From: Octopus bimaculoides | Lineage: Eukaryota | DNA: 38,078 bases | Direction: 5' to 3' | NCBI RefSeq assembly: GCF_001194135.2 | Contig: NC_068989.1 | Location: 67,695,100 to 67,733,177, forward strand | Part shown: positions 3,887 to 35,496 of the stretch, one piece after another | Position numbering within the stretch: position 1 is the first letter of the stretch | How the letters are laid out: each line of letters begins with the position of its first letter | Made by a program: the position numbers and the translations under genes | Notes under the pieces: generated by a model | The model's input: the letters and a program-made list of their open reading frames with translations, nothing else | Databases searched by the model: none | Told to the model about the DNA's origin: nothing

Positions 3887-4250
3887 ATTCATAGATGCAT
3901 ATGTATACATTCATACGTATAGATACCCCATCCAATTCCTTACACCCACCACCCACCCCTACCCACATACCCNNNNNNNNNNNNNNNNNNNNNNNNNNNN
4001 NNNNNNNNNNNNNNNNNNNNNNNNNNNNNNNNNNNNNNNNNNNNNNNNNNNNNNNNNNNNNNNNNNNNNNNNAAACAAGGAGAAAAAAAATTATAAATGT
4101 AGTGGTCAGCGATCTATCATGGTGATACTTATTTCAGTCATTTGACTAGAGCACTGCCATATTAAGTCTACTAACATTATACAAAAGTAAAAGGTTGACT
4201 TTTATATAATAAATAAGCATTGGTATTTCTTGATTCAAATTAACTTTTAC

Positions 4251-6650: not shown

Positions 6651-6722
6651 TTTAAATGCTCTCGCTGAATTTAATTGACCAAGAGTGCTTTTTAAGTGTT
6701 TATATGTAAAAGTATTACATAC

Positions 6723-6886
6723 TTTGTGTGTATTCTATGGAACCTAAATTTCTCATCACATCATTCATGTGTTGTTGCATCTCTTCCATCTGATTTTGTA
6801 CTTGTGAATCAAAGTGGTGAAATAAAGAGTCAAAGCCATTCCTTTGAGAGCCATCGTTTGAGTTGGAAAATGGATCATCTTGCCTC
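6723..6886 (-). CDS. HAX1: HAX1-like gene, coding exon 2 (164 nt)
   Basis: Acceptor TTATTCCTTATTCCTTTCACAG| and donor CAAA|GTATGT. Phase 2 in, phase 1 out. Encodes RQDDPFSNSNDGSQRNGFDSLFHHFDSQVQNQMEEMQQHMNDVMRNLGSIEYTQ, resembling the HAX1 GFDDL..DFN segment as recalled. Confidence 0.8.
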
Positions 6887-7689
6887 CTGTGAAAGGAATA
6901 AGGAATAACATACAATGAAAGCAATCTTTAAAAATTTCAAGCTGTTAGCACAATATCACACCAACATACACATACACAAACAATACATGTACACATACAC
7001 TCACCCACATATATGCATTCACTCAATCCCACATACAGAAACACACTAATCATACACACACAAACAAACAAACTTATTCCTAGATGACAGAAGAGGTGGG
7101 AGGTTGTAGACTATCATCTGGTTGTGAGAATAGGTCTTTGAAAGTTTTATGGTTGCCCCTTCCCCACCAACCTTCTCCCTTAATGTTAGAACAAATGTAT
7201 CTATCTACCTATCTATATATATATATGTATGCACACACACATACATAGTAAAAAATTGTGATAGAGCCAAATTGCCACTGACAACCGCAATATGGCAAAG
7301 AAGTTATAGGTATGGCCTTATCAACATGACCTCTAGCAGACACGCTTATATTTACTTTGTGTGCATGAAATACTATAAACAGATGTGGAGATAACAAGTT
7401 TTCTAGGAAATTCTTATGAGAGCAGCTTAGTCACCTAACATGATTCACACTTTTTCCCATACATTCTTGCAAACCTCCTCTCCAATACTCCTCTTGCCTG
7501 AGGAGCAACTACCTGTCTCTTTGGAGATACCACCAATTTATCCTCACTCTCTTCCCTAAATGTGAGTAGCCATGTAACTCCTATTCAACAAGAACCTGCT
7601 CTACTCTAAGCTCTTCCCTAACTTAACCTCTAGCTAACATAAGGACCAGTATGCCAACTGCTAGGGCTTATATACTTGCAAACTACATG

Positions 7690-8300
7690 GTGTTGGTGGC
7701 ATGAAAATAAAAAAAAAAAACACTCAGTACACACTGTAAAGTACAAATAGGGAGCACAAAGCAGTGATAAGTGAAATTGCAATGTTATCAATCCGAAAAT
7801 GCTTGATGCATGTTTGAACTGAGGAACAAGCTACTCACTGTGTATACACCTAGATCAGCTAGCAGCACCATCTATCTAGACTGTGAGATGCTAGCATTTG
7901 GGAGTAGTTATTTCCTCATCAGTTAGTGTCTGTGACTGATGAGGAAATAACTACTCCCAAATGCTAGCATCTCACAGTCTAGGTAAATGGTGCTGCAAGC
8001 TGATCTAGGTGTATACACACCATTTGTCAACAAGCGAGATATATTCTCCATGACAAAATACAGTGAGTAGCTTGTTCCCCAGTTCAAATGTGCATCAAAC
8101 ATATTCGGACTCATGATAACATAGCAATTACACTGTAAAGTGTTTGGGGTTAGGAAGAGCATCCAGCAGTAGAAATGAAGCCAAAGCAGACACTGGATCA
8201 TGTGCAGTCCTTGGGCTCAATGCACTCTTATTGAATCGTCCAGTTCATGCCAGCATGGAACATGGACATTCAATGACGAGGAGGATAATGATGGTGGAGG
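7690..8300 (+). mobile_element. SINE family B copy split by a 387-bp insertion
   Basis: Left part ...CACTCAGTACACACTGTAAAGT (to 7742); right part ACACTGTAAAGTGTTTGGGGTTAGGAAGAGCATCCAGC... (8130-8300) ending in a GAT-like tail. Confidence 0.7.
7743..8129. repeat. Foldback (long inverted repeat) insertion flanked by the 12-bp duplication ACACTGTAAAGT
   Basis: Inner arms 7839-7923 and 7935-8019 (85 bp, 3 mismatches, 11-nt loop). Outer arms 7775-7840 and 8061-8129 are more diverged. A 41-nt bulge lies at 8020-8060. The duplication is at 7731-7742 and 8130-8141. Confidence 0.9.
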
Positions 8301-10838: not shown

Positions 10839-12257
10839 NNNNNNNNNNNNNNNNNNNNNNNNNNNNNNNNNNNNNNNNNNNNNNNNNNNNNNNNNNNNNN
10901 NNNNNNNNNNNNNNNNNNNNNNNNNNNNNNNNNNNNNNNNNNNNNNNNNNNNNNNNNNNNNNNNNNNNNNNNNNNNNNNNNNNNNNNNNNNNNNNNNNNN
11001 NNNNNNNNNNNNNNNNNNNNNNNNNNNNNNNNNNNNNNNNNNNNNNNNNNNNNNNNNNNNNNNNNNNNNNNNNNNNNNNNNNNNNNNNNNNNNNNNNNNN
11101 NNNNNNNNNNNNNNNNNNNNNNNNNNNNNNNNNNNNNNNNNNNNNNNNNNNNNNNNNNNNNNNNNNNNNNNNNNNNNNNNNNNNNNNNNNNNNNNNNNNN
11201 NNNNNNNNNNNNNNNNNNNNNNNNNNNNNNNNNNNNNNNNNNNNNNNNNNNNNNNNNNNNNNNNNNNNNNNNNNNNNNNNNNNNNNNNNNNNNNNNNNNN
11301 NNNNNNNNNNNNNNNNNNNNNNNNNNNNNNNNNNNNNNNNNNNNNNNNNNNNNNNNNNNNNNNNNNNNNNNNNNNNNNNNNNNNNNNNNNNNNNNNNNNN
11401 NNNNNNNNNNNNNNNNNNNNNNNNNNNNNNNNNNNNNNNNNNNNNNNNNNNNNNNNNNNNNNNNNNNNNNNNNNNNNNNNNNNNNNNNNNNNNNNNNNNN
11501 NNNNNNNNNNNNNNNNNNNNNNNNNNNNNNNNNNNNNNNNNNNNNNNNNNNNNNNNNNNNNNNNNNNNNNNNNNNNNNNNNNNNNNNNNNNNNNNNNNNN
11601 NNNNNNNNNNNNNNNNNNNNNNNNNNNNNNNNNNNNNNNNNNNNNNNNNNNNNNNNNNNNNNNNNNNNNNNNNNNNNNNNNNNNNNNNNNNNNNNNGCAG
11701 ATGAGGGTTCTTTCCCTCTTTACACACCCTAAAAAAATTCTAATCATGACAAATGTATCCCATACTACTGATCTTTATGCGCATATTCCAAAATTCCAGT
11801 CTTATGGAACCTGTTAAAAGGATTTTGCTCCTGAAAAATGGAGGTCATGGAGCTCTAAAATGTAGAAGTTAAGGCTCCTATTGGGGGTGGGTGTCTTAAT
11901 GTCAACCAGAGAAGTTGAATTGTTGAGAATCTTTTTAATTTGGGTCTTATATGTATTGTTCGAATTTCTTTGAAATAGGAAATATATGTATGTTCACTGG
12001 GTTTGTAAAAGAGAGCAAAGCTACAGGAAACCAAAAGACGAATGATCACAATAAGCAGTCAGCTACCCTACCCTAGTTGTTACTCCTCCCCAATGTAGGA
12101 TTCCTCACCACACAGGTGACAGGCACAGCCGTAAGATGCATTACAGATCTATAGCAATTATATACATGCATATACATATACATTTGTGCAGATGTATACA
12201 CACACACACACATATATATATATATACACACACATAATATATGTATATTATATATAT

Positions 12258-16901: not shown

Positions 16902-16945
16902 CGATTATTGTCATCGAAAAAAGAATCGAAGAAAAACCGGAACAT
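16902..16945 (-). CDS. HAX1: HAX1-like gene, first coding exon (44 nt from ATG)
   Basis: GGAAAC-ATG TTC CGG TTT TTC TTC GAT TCT TTT TTC GAT GAC AAT AAT CG|GTAAAA gives MFRFFFDSFFDDNN. Phase 2 (CG + G = Arg) matches exon 2, and the Phe-rich start resembles the HAX1 N-terminus (recalled as LFRGFFGF). Confidence 0.65.
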
Positions 16946-18213: not shown

Positions 18214-19234
18214 CTGCAGGCGTATCCTCAGGGCAGGCCCGTTCACTCGCACCATTTTCCCCACTTTCATCCACCTTCCAGAAACTGGCTAGAAGGCAAC
18301 ACTTCCCTCTCTACCCCTATTTTCCTTTTCAAGTGAAACTTGAAGAAGTTGATCAGGGATTGGCCAAAGAGAAAAATGTTCGTCTTCAGCCCCTTCAATC
18401 TCGTCCACTATACAACTTCTTTCGCCATGACCACCAGGCATATAAACACAGCATTTTCTTCTTGGTTAAAGGAAGGCGGTGGGGCGATCTTCACGATGGA
18501 TTCAGTTGATAACCGGGTCCGTCCTACATGCGACAGCAGGTGTTCAACATGAACCCACAGGTCAGCAATGCTCGGGCACTGGACGAGTGCATGCAGGACC
18601 GCCCCCTTGTCCAGCGCGCATCTCGAACATGCTCGGCTGACAGGACTTCCGTTCCTGTAAAGTTTATCTCGAAAAGGCAAAGCTTCCCGGTAGCGCTGCC
18701 AGGCCAGAGATTTTGGAAATTATCCATCGGTCCCGGGCCGAAAATTCTCCGAAAAGAGCAGTTAGCTGATTTTCGACACCCAAGGTCTCCCCAAGAACGT
18801 CGTTGCATTTGCCCTCCACTAATCCTCTATAAAAATGCTAAAGTGGACGTTCGACCTATCGCAGTGCCCGTTTGGCTGTGGGCTCTGAGCGCTTGAAGGC
18901 ATTCCACTTTCTGAAAGCCCTCTCGCGGTCTCTGTTTTACACAGGACTGCAGCTCCGTTAAAGAAGCTAGTTGCGAAAATACGTGTCTGGCGAACAACAC
19001 TTGTTCACCGTCGAGGAAGCACTGGAGATGTCGTAGGCTCAGTGCATATCTGCGCATCATCAGCCACGGCATGTCCAGGCCACCACGCAGCGGGTGTTGA
19101 CAGCAGATAGACCGCCTGACCGTCGGGACGCGTCCCTTCCACAAGAAACAGAAGAATATAACGATCCAACGTAATACGGTCAAGCGGTAGTAAATGACGG
19201 ACGCGATGTACGCGTTAGCCACCTTTACTCGACC
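18214..19234 (-). mobile_element. L1/Tx1-type LINE, decayed 3' part of ORF2
   Basis: GRVKVANAYIASVIYYRL...FLWKG..P.VRR..CCQHPLRGGLDMP, then LAW...LP.RDKL and a C-terminal zinc motif CSRC...HALVQCP. The end is lost in a gap. Confidence 0.85.
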
Positions 19235-19268
19235 TATAATAATAATGATGACGATGATGATGATGATA

Positions 19269-20850
19269 CAGGAAACAAAGTTGGAGTATGATCTGGGAAG
19301 AGGTAAGGGAAAACTGAACCATTTGCTATTTATAGACGACCTGAAGCTATTCACAAAAACTGAGACAGAACTGGGCAGCCAAGTCGAGTCGGTGCGGATT
19401 TTCTCCAATGATATTAAGATGGAGTTTGGACTCTCAAAATGTGCCACGATGGTGATGAGACGAGGAAAGCTTGTCAGGGCAGAAGGCATATGATTGCCAA
19501 GTGATGAGATGATGAAGGCAATTCAACCTCAATCCAGCTATAAATAACTGGGAATGCTTGAGGCAGATGGAATCAAACACAATGACATGAACAAAAAGAC
19601 GGAAAGAGAATACCTGCTGTAAGTAAGAAAAATACTGGTTTCAAAGCTGAATGCCAGAAACATAATTTCGGCAATAGACTCATGCACAGTCGCAGTAGTT
19701 CAGTATGGCGATGGAATCCTGAAGTGGACAAAAGAGCAGCTAAAGGAAATGGACAGGAAGTCAAAAAAGCTCCTAACGATGCATGGAACTCATCATCCAC
19801 GTGCAAACACTGACCAATACATGAAGAGAGAAAATGGAGGCAGATGACTGATAAGTGTGGAAGACTGCGTACGTATCGAACTCGAGAGCTTCATGAGGTA
19901 CCTAGCCCAAAGTATGGAAATCTTGCTAGTGGCAGTGAGGAACGAGGGAGTATTGGAAGCAGAGAAAAAAGGAAAAGCAAAAAAAGTACAAAAAGGACAC
20001 GAAGAAGAATTATGCAAGAAGGGACTACACAATCAATTCCATATAGCCACAACAGAAGTTGCTGGAAAAATAGGTGGGATTGGCTGATGGAAGGAACACT
20101 AAAAAAGAAACTGAGAGCACTAAACTGGCATCGTAAGAGCGAGCTTTGGCCACGAATTGGAGGGTCAGATGTGGTACAGTGTCTCCCCTGTACCGCATCT
20201 GTAAAAGAGTAGAGGAAACCATTGCCCGAATCACGAACGAATGCCCTAGACTTGCCTAAAAACATTGCAAGTTGTGGTGACACGATCAGGTAGCGGAAGT
20301 GCTACGTTGGAGACTGTGCGAAAAGTGGGGGGCTAGAGAAAGGCAAGACATGGTATGAGCACAAACCGCAGAGAGTGGCGGAGTCGGAGACTAGCAAAAT
20401 CCTCTCGGATTTCCCAATGCAAACAAATCAGGCACTAGAGCATAACAGACCGGACCTAGTGGTGGTGGACAAGGTGCATCACATATGCAGTTGATGTTGA
20501 ATACCCCTTTGACCCACGAATAGTCAAAAAGGGAGGCGAAAAGATAGATAAATATAGCCCTCTTAAGTACGAAAATGAAGAAGGTGAAGATAGTGCCAAT
20601 TATTGTTGGGTGCCTGAGAACAGTATCAGAAGGCATCAAGAGAAATGAATATAAAGGAAGCTGGAATTGAGTGCCCGGTAGAACTGTTACAAAAGGTTTA
20701 CCTCCTTGGTACGGCCAGAATAATCAGGAAAGTATTAGACAGCTGAAAAGAATGGATAGCATGGTACCGTTGGCTGCTGGTTGCAAGCCCACTACACATG
20801 CAAGACTCCAGGAGCTCCAACAAAACCTGTGCTAAAGAGAAATAATAATG
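19269..20850 (+). mobile_element. 5'-truncated R4/Dong-type LINE (RT C-terminus and REL endonuclease), decayed
   Basis: NHLLFIDDLKLF, MEFGLSKCA, HDQVA..LRWRLC, HKPQRV, NRPDLVVVDK, KIDKY, PIIVG.L, LLGTARIIRKVL. Short 3' UTR ending in AATAATAAT; an (AAT)/(GAT) microsatellite lies at the 5' junction. Confidence 0.85.
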
Positions 20851-22986: not shown

Positions 22987-23274
22987 ATAGGGAAAATGAG
23001 AATGGTATATATTAATGAGATGACGACATAGAAGAAGGGAGTAAAAGAATAAGGAGGTGGAAAGAAAGAAGAAAAAAGAAGCATAAAAGTTCATAGTTCA
23101 GCTTTCCGAAGTTATAAAAACCAGAGCATGAGTCCTTAGGCGCAATCTTGCGTAGATCCATGAGCGTAAGTCCTTAGGTGCAATCCTGCGTAGATCCAAG
23201 CGGGTTAAAATCCTGATATAATAGACATATTATGTCGTCATCTCATTAATATATACCATTCTCATTTTCCCTAT
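22987..23274. repeat. Perfect 44-bp inverted repeat pair (22987-23030 and 23231-23274)
   Basis: ATAGGGAAAATGAGAATGGTATATATTAATGAGATGACGACATA and its exact reverse complement. The spacer contains a 30-bp tandem duplication (23131-23160 / 23169-23198). Confidence 0.9.
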
Positions 23275-24240
23275 GCTAGTGCCCTCTGAAGCTTTGAATC
23301 ACTAGGTCTTATACGATGATCCATAAGTCAGAAGCGAACCCCCCCCCANNNNNNNNNNNNNNNNNNNNNNNNNNNNNNNNNNNNNNNNNNNNNNNNNNNN
23401 NNNNNNNNNNNNNNNNNNNNNNNNNNNNNNNNNNNNNNNNNNNNNNNNNNNNNNNNNNNNNNNNNNNNNNNNNNNNNNNNNNNNNNNNNNNNNNNNNNNN
23501 NNNNNNNNNNNNNNNNNNNNNNNNNNNNNNNNNNNNNNNNNNNNNNNNNNNNNNNNNNNNNNNNNNNNNNNNNNNNNNNNNNNNNNNNNNNNNNNNNNNN
23601 NNNNNNNNNNNNNNNNNNNNNNNNNNNNNNNNNNNNNNNNNNNNNNNNNNNNNNNNNNNNNNNNNNNNNNNNNNNNNNNNNNNNNNNNNNNNNNNNNNNN
23701 NNNNNNNNNNNNNNNNNNNNNNNNNNNNNNNNNNNNNNNNNNNNNNNNNNNNNNNNNNNNNNNNNNNNNNNNNNNNNNNNNNNNNNNNNNNNNNNNNNNN
23801 NNNNNNNNNNNNNNNNNNNNNNNNNNNNNNNNNNNNNNNNNNNNNNNNNNNNNNNNNNNNNNNNNNNNNNNNNNNNNNNNNNNNNNNNNNNNNNNNNNNN
23901 NNNNNNNNNNNNNNNNNNNNNNNNNNNNNNNNNNNNNNNNNNNNNNNNNNNNNNNNNNNNNNNNNNNNNNNNNNNNNNNNNNNNNNNNNNNNNNNNNNNN
24001 NNNNNNNNNNNNNNNNNNNNNNNNNNNNNNNNNNNNNNNNNNNNNNNNNNNNNNNNNNNNNNAAAACGGGGTAACAAAGACTGTTAGAGTTATTTCCCTT
24101 TATTCAAAATTTTAAAACCTTGGTTTGAAATTATCTCCCTTCGATTAAGAACTTTCCCATAAATTCATGCGACGATTGACTGTTCAATTAGTGTTTAAAA
24201 TAACAATGATTAATTAATAAACTGGAATATATTTTGCATG

Positions 24241-26559: not shown

Positions 26560-27500
26560 CCCTGCTTACAACCTGATCCAAATCACTGAACCACCGTTCG
26601 TGCAGGAAATGAGTCACGGTAACCTGATGATGCAAGATCTGGGTTGTAGGAAGGATGAGGCTGCACTTCTAGCCCTTCAAACTCCTCAAGTTTGTACTTG
26701 TTCACATTGATAATATGTGCAGGAGCATCGTCATGCTGTAAGAGTGTACGTCTGCCATTGTCTAATGATAGCTGGAGGGCTTTTAAAGCATCACATATCC
26801 GCAGCAGTTGTTGAGCATGAAAGTTAGCGTTCGTAGCATCACCACCTGGGAAAGGTTCAAAGCAAAACACCTCTTTGAAATTCCACCAAACACACAACAT
26901 GACTTTCTGTTCAAACTGCTTTTTGTTTGACAATAGGTTCTGAAGCCTGGCCGGAACGAAGCCACTGATTTCTCTTATTAAGATTACAAAAATAGATCAA
27001 TTTTCTATCCCTGCCATCGACGCCAAAAACTGGACTGTTGAAGATTTACTTGAGCCTGATCATTGGGTTGGTCTTGAAGAACTTCCTGACAACATTTGTT
27101 CACAAGTCTAAGCTTATAGAGGTGTCGATTGACGATGCTTTCTGAAGGACCAGGTTCTGCTGACAATGTACAAGTGTTTGTACTTAGCTCTTGTTCAGCC
27201 TTTTCAAGCAAGATTTCATCTTTCACAGTAGAATATATCCCCCACTTTGGTTTGTCTTTGAGGCTGGTGTCAACTTCTTTGAAGCATCTGAAATAGTTTT
27301 GTGACAGTTCCTTGGCCTTCTTTTTGCCGCTGCCCTTGCACTCAGTTTTTTTTCTCCACATGTAGCGTAAAATGCCTCTAATTGCCTTTTTTCACCACTT
27401 ATTATCGTAGTAGTAAAATAAAGAATAAACAATTCAGCAACGATTGGACTACAAAATATATCGAATTCATGTAATAGCATGGAGATACAAGTTGCCAAAA
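26560..27500 (-). mobile_element. Highly decayed mariner transposase
   Basis: SLKDKPK.G (LxDxPRSG-like), KVMLCVWW, LLQHDDAPAH and PHPSYNPDLASSGY (HPPYSPDLAPSDY-like). Confidence 0.85.
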
Positions 27501-35084: not shown

Positions 35085-35496
35085 TCGGCGATCTTTCGGT
35101 ACGATTATCTAAATATCGGCCTTTTCCGTAAAAAGTGTCTTCGGCGATCTTTACCAAAGATCTTCACTACGGTGTTAGGGTTAGGGTTTTAGTGTCAGGG
35201 TTAGGGTTTTACAGTTAGGGTTAGTGTTTAGGGTTAGGGTTACGGTTACGGTTAGGGACGGAATTCCTTAACGCAAACCCTAAAACCCAAACCCTAACCG
35301 TAAACCTAACCCTAACCCTAACTCTAAGCCCTTCCAAATAAATCGCGCTTTCTGTATGTCTTTCGCTGTTATGACATCGTTTCCTTGTTTCTCTCCAACA
35401 CTTCTTACGGAAAAAGCCGATCTTTGGTAAAGATCCCCGAAGACACTTTTTACGGAAAAGGCCGATATTTAGGTAATCGTACCGAAAAATCGTCGA
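35085..35496. mobile_element. Palindromic MITE-like element with ~78-bp terminal inverted repeats and opposed telomere-like tracts
   Basis: Arms 35085-35162 and 35419-35496 are near-perfect inverses. TTAGGG-like units at ~35176-35238, central GGAATTCC, CCCTAA-like units at ~35256-35305; T-runs on both flanks. Confidence 0.85.

Follow-up and report, generated by a model that had tools for sequence, protein, structure and literature searches.

The analysed window is a 38,078-nucleotide stretch of the Octopus bimaculoides genome (NC_068989.1, positions 67,695,100 to 67,733,177 of the forward strand), and all positions below refer to it. The window contains a 387-bp insertion at 7743–8129 that interrupts an older SINE copy and consists almost entirely of an inverted repeat. 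A gene lies around the insertion on the minus strand. The 95-residue translation of two nearby minus-strand exons is 100% identical to the uncharacterised O. bimaculoides LOC106883743, and the search with the host protein returned matches to O. bimaculoides proteins only. The exons are arranged as follows.

16904–16945, minus strand: exon 1 of LOC106883743, coding start (MFRFFFDSFFDDNN), with the ATG at 16945
6720–6887, minus strand: exon 2 of LOC106883743
about 4368–4251, minus strand: exon 3 of LOC106883743

The hairpin formed by the insertion is located inside the intron of about 10 kb between exons 1 and 2, 844 nt upstream of the acceptor site of exon 2. The initial annotation had placed it in intron 1, about 850 nt upstream of exon 2; the distance agrees, and the statement is true only given a gene on the minus strand. 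The gene model occupies 116 kb for a protein of 128 residues. Its two database isoforms diverge at the end of exon 3 (4149–4250, minus strand), where P0002 continues past a GT donor into the intron (…LPQVKVNLNQ…) and P0001 is spliced to a later exon.

The insertion and its immediate surroundings are composed of the following parts, where TSD denotes the target-site duplication.

7689–7742 (start approximate), plus strand: 5' part of the host SINE, ending in the left TSD copy; alignment GGTGGCATG(T)AAAA...GTACAC(T)CTGTAAAGT
7731–7742: left TSD copy ACACTGTAAAGT, an exact direct repeat
7743–7769, minus strand: one-sided extension or tail at the left end, 27 nt; it has no partner at the right end in the arm alignment, and neither fold pairs it with the other arm
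7770–7923, minus strand: left arm, 154 nt, defined by inverted repeats and alignment; under the model proposed below, a 5'-truncated copy whose reading direction runs outward from the centre
7924–7934: centre or loop, 11 nt (TAGTGTCTGTG), defined by inverted repeats, fold and alignment; under the same model, the junction of the truncated copies
7935–8129, plus strand: right arm, 195 nt, ending in ...GCAATT
about 8020–8062, plus strand: segment present only in the right arm, 43 nt, with a TGT microrepeat at its borders, from the arm-to-arm alignment
8130–8141: right TSD copy, an exact direct repeat
8142–8300 (end approximate), plus strand: 3' part of the host SINE (GTTTGGGGTTAGGAAGAGCATCCAGC...), from the SINE alignment

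The two TSD copies are identical over 12 bp, and the repeat cannot be extended on either side. The sequences flanking the insertion belong to a single SINE copy, half of it on each side, as seen in the alignment with other SINE copies of the window. Uninterrupted copies at about 2431–2518, 2212–2372 and 672–596 align across the junction, and the motif ...CAC(T)CTGTAAAGTGGTTGG... is single in the other copies. Because these copies carry the motif once, 12 bp were duplicated upon entry of the 387 bp. The segment 7743–8129 is one genuine insertion into the SINE. An insertion of this kind with a 12-bp flanking duplication had been proposed in the initial annotation, and the proposal is borne out by the exact repeat and by the collinearity of the SINE across the junction.

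The palindrome might alternatively be a fold-back artefact, produced when the O. bimaculoides genome was assembled from short reads. PLE-type (Penelope-like) and other palindromic structures trouble short-read assemblies (PMC8557442), and the window contains ten N gaps. The unit is nevertheless surrounded by unique sequence, and the nearest gaps, at 3973–4072 and 10839–11696, are over 2.6 kb away. It is bracketed by an exact TSD and interrupts the SINE precisely, and its arms are imperfect, with 11 mismatches and two indels. Palindromes made by assemblers are normally perfect and located at contig ends, unlike this unit. An artefact is extremely improbable.

The inner arms, 7839–7923 and 7935–8019, are each 85 nt long, 96% complementary and separated by 11 nt. 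They contain exactly three mismatches, at 7861/7997, 7872/7986 and 7875/7983, so that the inner stem described earlier (85 bp, three mismatches, 11-nt loop) is reproduced exactly. The outer arms align in two pieces, 7787–7841 with 8060–8114 (55 nt, 87%) and 7770–7790 with 8114–8134 (21 nt, 90%). Treated as a single block, 7770–7838 against 8063–8134, they extend over about 69 nt with eight mismatches and a 3-nt indel. The remaining parts of the earlier description hold in kind, and their sizes are revised. The diverged outer stem, given as about 66 bp, measures about 69 nt; the asymmetric bulge comprises 43 nt rather than 41; and the unpaired left end comprises 27 nt (7743–7769) rather than 32. 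The 43-nt segment was either lost from the left arm or already distinguished the two templates.

At the right junction, the pairing of the left arm runs 4–5 nt beyond the right arm into the TSD (CACT, 8131–8134), constituting a junction microhomology. The two insert ends read ...GCAATT and ...CCCTATTTGT. SINE copies of the window end in (GAT)n-like tails; inspection of the sequence reveals no A-rich tail and no (GAT)n-type or microsatellite tail at either insert end. Tandem subrepeats are also absent from 7650–8250 in a TRF search. The starts of the two arms beside the centre (7935–7950 and 7908–7923) read CTGATGAGGAAA, which is similar to the hammerhead core CUGAUGA...GAAA but lacks helix II.

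The folding energy of the insertion as plus-strand RNA is −260.9 kcal/mol, compared with −99.5 ± 5.7 kcal/mol for shuffled sequences (z = −28.3). The minus strand, which is the sense strand of the pre-mRNA, folds at −266.2 kcal/mol (z = −30.3). The initial annotation had suggested folding the RNA, and on both strands the structure is stable far beyond the shuffles. A long duplex is hence predicted in the sense strand of the pre-mRNA, within an annotated intron.

Nominally, pairing is closer in the inner arms than in the outer ones. Mismatches affect 3 of 85 inner positions (3.5%) and 8 of 65 outer positions (12.3%), a contrast that is not significant in a Fisher test (p = 0.057). The better preservation of the inner stem had been taken as a sign of selection or conversion, a reading that this test does not sustain. 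Any one of three causes would be enough for the contrast: chance, two templates that differed slightly, or gene conversion confined by the 43-nt indel.

The insertion is best read as a Penelope-like head-to-head double integration, to which we assign a probability of roughly 0.45. Under this model, a staggered cut 12 bp wide would have been filled in to yield the TSD. The inserted DNA would be composed of two 5'-truncated cDNA copies of the same retroelement 3' end of about 200 nt, one primed at either side of the cut, and the two joined head-to-head at 7924–7934. Synthesis of the left copy would have begun at a template position 27 nt 3' of that used for the right copy, and the one-sided tail and the non-inverted ends would follow from this offset. 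The right copy would stop where the template (TCACT, left arm) and the target (ACACT) have CACT in common, a microhomology of 4 nt. On this reading, the hairpin would be a by-product of integration and not a retroposed hairpin RNA or a MITE.

This architecture has counterparts in published work on PLEs such as Penelope/Poseidon, Neptune and Naiad (PMC8557442, PMC3846280, PMC11167929). PLE insertions display strong 5' truncation and often abut an inverted 5'-truncated copy, and they carry a tail of 30–40 bp that is often found at one end only (PMC8557442). The inverted pLTRs of Adineta vaga are 181–218 bp long; one of them bears a 31-bp tail, and the TSDs measure 8–10 bp (PMC3846280). In purified form, a PLE protein cuts both strands of the target and extends them, and its reverse transcription starts at two adjacent internal template sites, the spacing of which equals the tail (PMC11167929). 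For de novo PLE insertions the median length is 128 bp, and the TSDs of both LINEs and PLEs vary in length (PMC9977147). In O. vulgaris, PLEs are one of six annotated TE orders, with 31 recently active families (PMC13282606).

The insertion shares several features with these elements. Two short inverted truncated units, 7770–7923 and 7935–8129, meet at an 11-nt centre inside one TSD, with lengths of about 154–195 nt compared with 181–218 bp for the A. vaga pLTRs. An extension is present at one end only. It comprises 27 nt, or 31 nt counting the 4-nt CACT, compared with 31 nt in A. vaga and 30–40 generally, the 27-nt figure being slightly under the published range. The lack of a poly(A) or microsatellite tail and the intronic location are additional likenesses, and the short TSD would be another if its length is not fixed. 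A possible ORF start also runs off the 3' end. One reading frame stays open as far as the outer end in each arm, and an ATG of the right arm lies 14 codons from the end, or 24 with the tail. In A. vaga, the pLTR covers the initial 12 codons of the ORF, a figure that rises to 22 when the tail is included, which is a weak parallel.

The insertion also differs from known PLEs. Its TSD is 12 bp, in a single copy, whereas the A. vaga examples have 8–10 bp. No ORF-bearing copy lies between the arms, and neither the window nor the protein searches linked the arms to an RT/GIY-YIG element. The differences between the arms, a 43-nt indel together with 3.5% inner and 12.3% outer mismatches, count against a PLE and require two non-identical templates, later decay or conversion.

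The window contains no PLE, GIY-YIG or Penelope-type domain. A 30-residue reading of the outer end of the left arm gave one spurious repetitive match among 1.84 billion representative proteins, and a 68-residue reading of the right arm had no words in common with anything in a collection of 5.8 billion proteins. The arms do not look coding. An Rfam search of both strands (E ≤ 10) found no hammerhead ribozyme; CUGAUGAGGAAA is present near the centre without helix II. Canonical PLE pLTRs possess a hammerhead motif, but Naiad-type and Chlamys PLEs are without one, and under the model the arms lack their 5' parts.

Priming from both target strands is also a property of L1 twin priming, in which both strands prime reverse transcription and give rise to an inverted 5' part and a TSD. 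Under the PLE model, the use of both strands as primers, the inverted part and the TSD would be common to L1 twin priming and the present insertion. In twin priming, however, the two copies derive from adjacent, different parts of the RNA, resulting in an inversion without a palindrome, with poly(A) at the 3' end.

The palindromic appearance of the unit also resembles that of DNA transposons. A non-autonomous cut-and-paste element, namely a long-TIR MITE or foldback, uncharacterised or MULE-like, with long TSDs and one asymmetric end, is possible but doubtful. Like palindromic MITEs, the unit consists almost wholly of an inverted repeat around a very small loop, and the window holds two further inverted-repeat elements. 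The inverted repeat, however, ends 27 nt before the left end of the unit, so that the TIRs miss the element end. Known cut-and-paste superfamilies generate TSDs of 2–11 bp, a range that does not include the 12 bp found here, and the length is typically fixed for a superfamily (for example TA, TTAA, 3, 8 or 9–10 bp). No other choice of boundaries yields TIRs and a TSD together. Boundaries at CAGTG...CACTG, an 8-bp TSD with ACAC inside and TAGGG hAT-like ends were tried, and none gives both. The initial annotation had already stated that the element ends are not inverted repeats and that the unit is not a standard MITE, which agrees with the 27 unpaired nucleotides at the left end and the 12-bp TSD. 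It had named as the alternative an ordinary MITE with a TA or TTAA TSD and true TIRs; at this locus the TSD is 12 bp and end-to-end TIRs are absent.

The TE annotation of O. vulgaris includes TIR transposons, Mutator and MITEs (PMC13282606). Foldback/MULE elements are known to have short asymmetric end motifs in some cases, and TIR pairs about 93% identical (PMC3169594). The unit is reminiscent of Foldback/MULE-Phantom elements such as Drosophila FB and Meloidogyne Tm1, in which long imperfect inverted repeats likewise dominate the unit and asymmetric outermost motifs are tolerated (PMC3169594). Three differences separate it from these elements. FB and Tm1 TIRs are built of 13–15-bp tandem subrepeats (PMC3169594), and the arms here have none. 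Foldback/MULE TSDs are of 8–10 bp, usually 9 (PMC3169594), which the 12 bp here exceed. The asymmetry of their ends amounts to 7 nt, compared with 27 nt here. The palindromic MITEs derived from Harbinger in frog are similar in that one repeat folds into long near-perfect dsRNA within transcripts and is predicted to be hyper-edited (PMC5625713). They possess true TIRs and 3-bp TSDs, in contrast to the non-inverted ends and the 12-bp TSD of the unit.

Also against a cut-and-paste element, the window has no second copy of the unit, nor a source for it, in 34 kb of non-N sequence; blastn with word sizes of 9 and 7 returned only the unit itself and its SINE flanks. An exact 22-mer of the inner stem occurs 0 times in contigs from metagenomes, viruses and prokaryote genomes. 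The core of the abundant octopus SINE is likewise found 0 times in metagenomes, which makes this search uninformative on the octopus genome. No paper joining octopus, foldback and transposon was found in the literature searched. A local snap-back duplication of flanking DNA was considered as well and rejected, since the arms match nothing nearby.

The TSD of variable-length type is also typical of target-primed reverse transcription (PMC9977147) and invites comparison with LINEs. In this scenario, a hairpin RNA would have been copied by a LINE machinery, or a cDNA would have snapped back and self-primed its second strand, with the free end joined at CACT. The snap-back version accounts for a palindrome in which one arm stops early, and the microhomology at the right junction fits either version. 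LINE reverse-transcriptase remnants and many SINEs are present in the window, but the unit has no similarity to the LINE or SINE sequences there. It also lacks an A-rich or (GAT)n-type tail on either strand and matches no Rfam family or small-RNA gene at threshold. A retroposed perfect hairpin of 170 bp would probably be a poor template for reverse transcription. Taken together, retroposition driven by a LINE is unlikely. The initial annotation had favoured LINE-mediated insertion. What stands of this view is that an endonuclease of the retroelement type, with its variable TSDs, fits better than a cut-and-paste transposase; the part that lacks support is the LINE itself, as no LINE-type tail is found. 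The related suggestion of a retroposed hairpin RNA is less economical than two head-to-head 5'-truncated copies, one of which has a 27-nt extension (PMC8557442, PMC3846280, PMC11167929).

A more far-reaching interpretation is that the unit is the founding copy of an undescribed cephalopod family of mobile elements. Such elements would insert as hairpins, formed beforehand or templated on themselves, and would have 12-bp TSDs and ends that are not inverted repeats. Copies in introns would make the family a major source, specific to the lineage, of the long dsRNA behind the exceptional ADAR activity of coleoids. We regard this as improbable.

If the two arms were identical at insertion, their divergence provides a rough date. 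The arms differ at 11 of 150 positions, corresponding to a Jukes–Cantor distance of about 0.077. A distance to consensus of 0.09 has been calibrated to about 25 My (PMC13282606). Very roughly, the insertion may be 11 My old, with a range of 5–19 My across two parts of the arms. The identity of the two 12-bp TSD copies is compatible with an age of about 11 My. O. vulgaris and O. sinensis split off 13–33 My ago (PMC13282606); together with the age estimate, this predicts an empty orthologous site in both species.

A hairpin of this stability raises the question of function. It could be a selected functional RNA element, either a young miRNA or hpRNA precursor or an ADAR recruiter that regulates the splicing or editing of LOC106883743. 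In favour of such a role, the very stable duplex is on the sense strand of the pre-mRNA, it is located 844 nt from the acceptor site of exon 2, and its inner arms are nominally better matched, although the contrast with the outer arms does not reach significance. The hairpin has no complementarity to exon 2. In the absence of such pairing, it cannot be the editing-complementary sequence for exon 2, and the earlier suggestion that it may guide editing is, for this exon, not upheld.

An Rfam search of both strands for curated miRNA families gave a best score of 44.8 bits against a gathering score of 80, with generic hairpin matches only; these matches are sub-threshold and strand-symmetric. Drosha substrates are far shorter than a duplex of 150–170 bp, which is far too long for this enzyme. 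The sequence is not found in those parts of the supplements of the octopus miRNA catalogue that were available (PMC9699675), and a survey of molluscs including O. bimaculoides found no dedicated endo-siRNA pathway (PMC12479628). The initial annotation had suggested that the hairpin may yield small RNAs, and these results lend the suggestion no support.

Editing is heavy at intronic hairpins in coleoids, a further point in favour of a function (PMC9699675, PMC5625713). In octopus it occurs mostly in introns and 3'UTRs, at hairpins (PMC9699675). Octopus also has an exceptionally high fraction of loci with long near-perfect dsRNA and very high hyper-editing (PMC5625713), and the abundance of such loci argues against a special role for any one of them. 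A selected function is very improbable. When intron 1 is transcribed, the hairpin would most likely be a passive, promiscuous ADAR substrate open to A-to-I editing, as are many octopus loci of this kind, and we infer the absence of a dedicated function.

The hairpin alone is of little weight, being another transposon-derived intronic hairpin in a genome rich in them, and it adds a further, unannotated case to a class of structure that is already known. As a worked example, it illustrates how a single retroelement integration may at once produce a duplex of about 170 bp suited to ADAR, with no need for two neighbouring inverted repeats. If PLE double insertions are frequent in octopus introns, they would help to explain the abundant long dsRNA loci and the hyper-editing (PMC5625713). 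The locus also shows that a MITE-like dot-plot can mislead TE annotation.

The window contains several other mobile-element sequences. A second, unrelated imperfect foldback of about 412 bp is located at 35085–35496, with arms at 35085–35162 and 35419–35496 (78 nt, 95%). Its interior is made up of telomere-like repeats arranged head-to-head, which resemble (TTAGGG)n in the left half and (CCCTAA)n in the right half, and its right arm contains about 75 extra nucleotides. A 288-bp element at 22987–23274 has perfect 44-nt TIRs (ATAGGGAAAATGAGAATGG...) and no obvious TSD, with an N gap at 23349; on these sequence features it looks like a young MITE. Remnants of mariner-type transposases (Pfam PF01359) are found at 1414–2145 on the plus strand (E = 7.6e-16) and at 26586–26996 on the minus strand (E = 8e-8). 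Remnants of LINE-type reverse transcriptases lie on opposite strands at 18411–18719 (minus) and 19194–19490 (plus), among long overlapping ORFs at 18.4–20.3 kb. For these LINE remnants, the zf-RVT match passes the Pfam curated cut-off and the RVT_1 match falls just under it.
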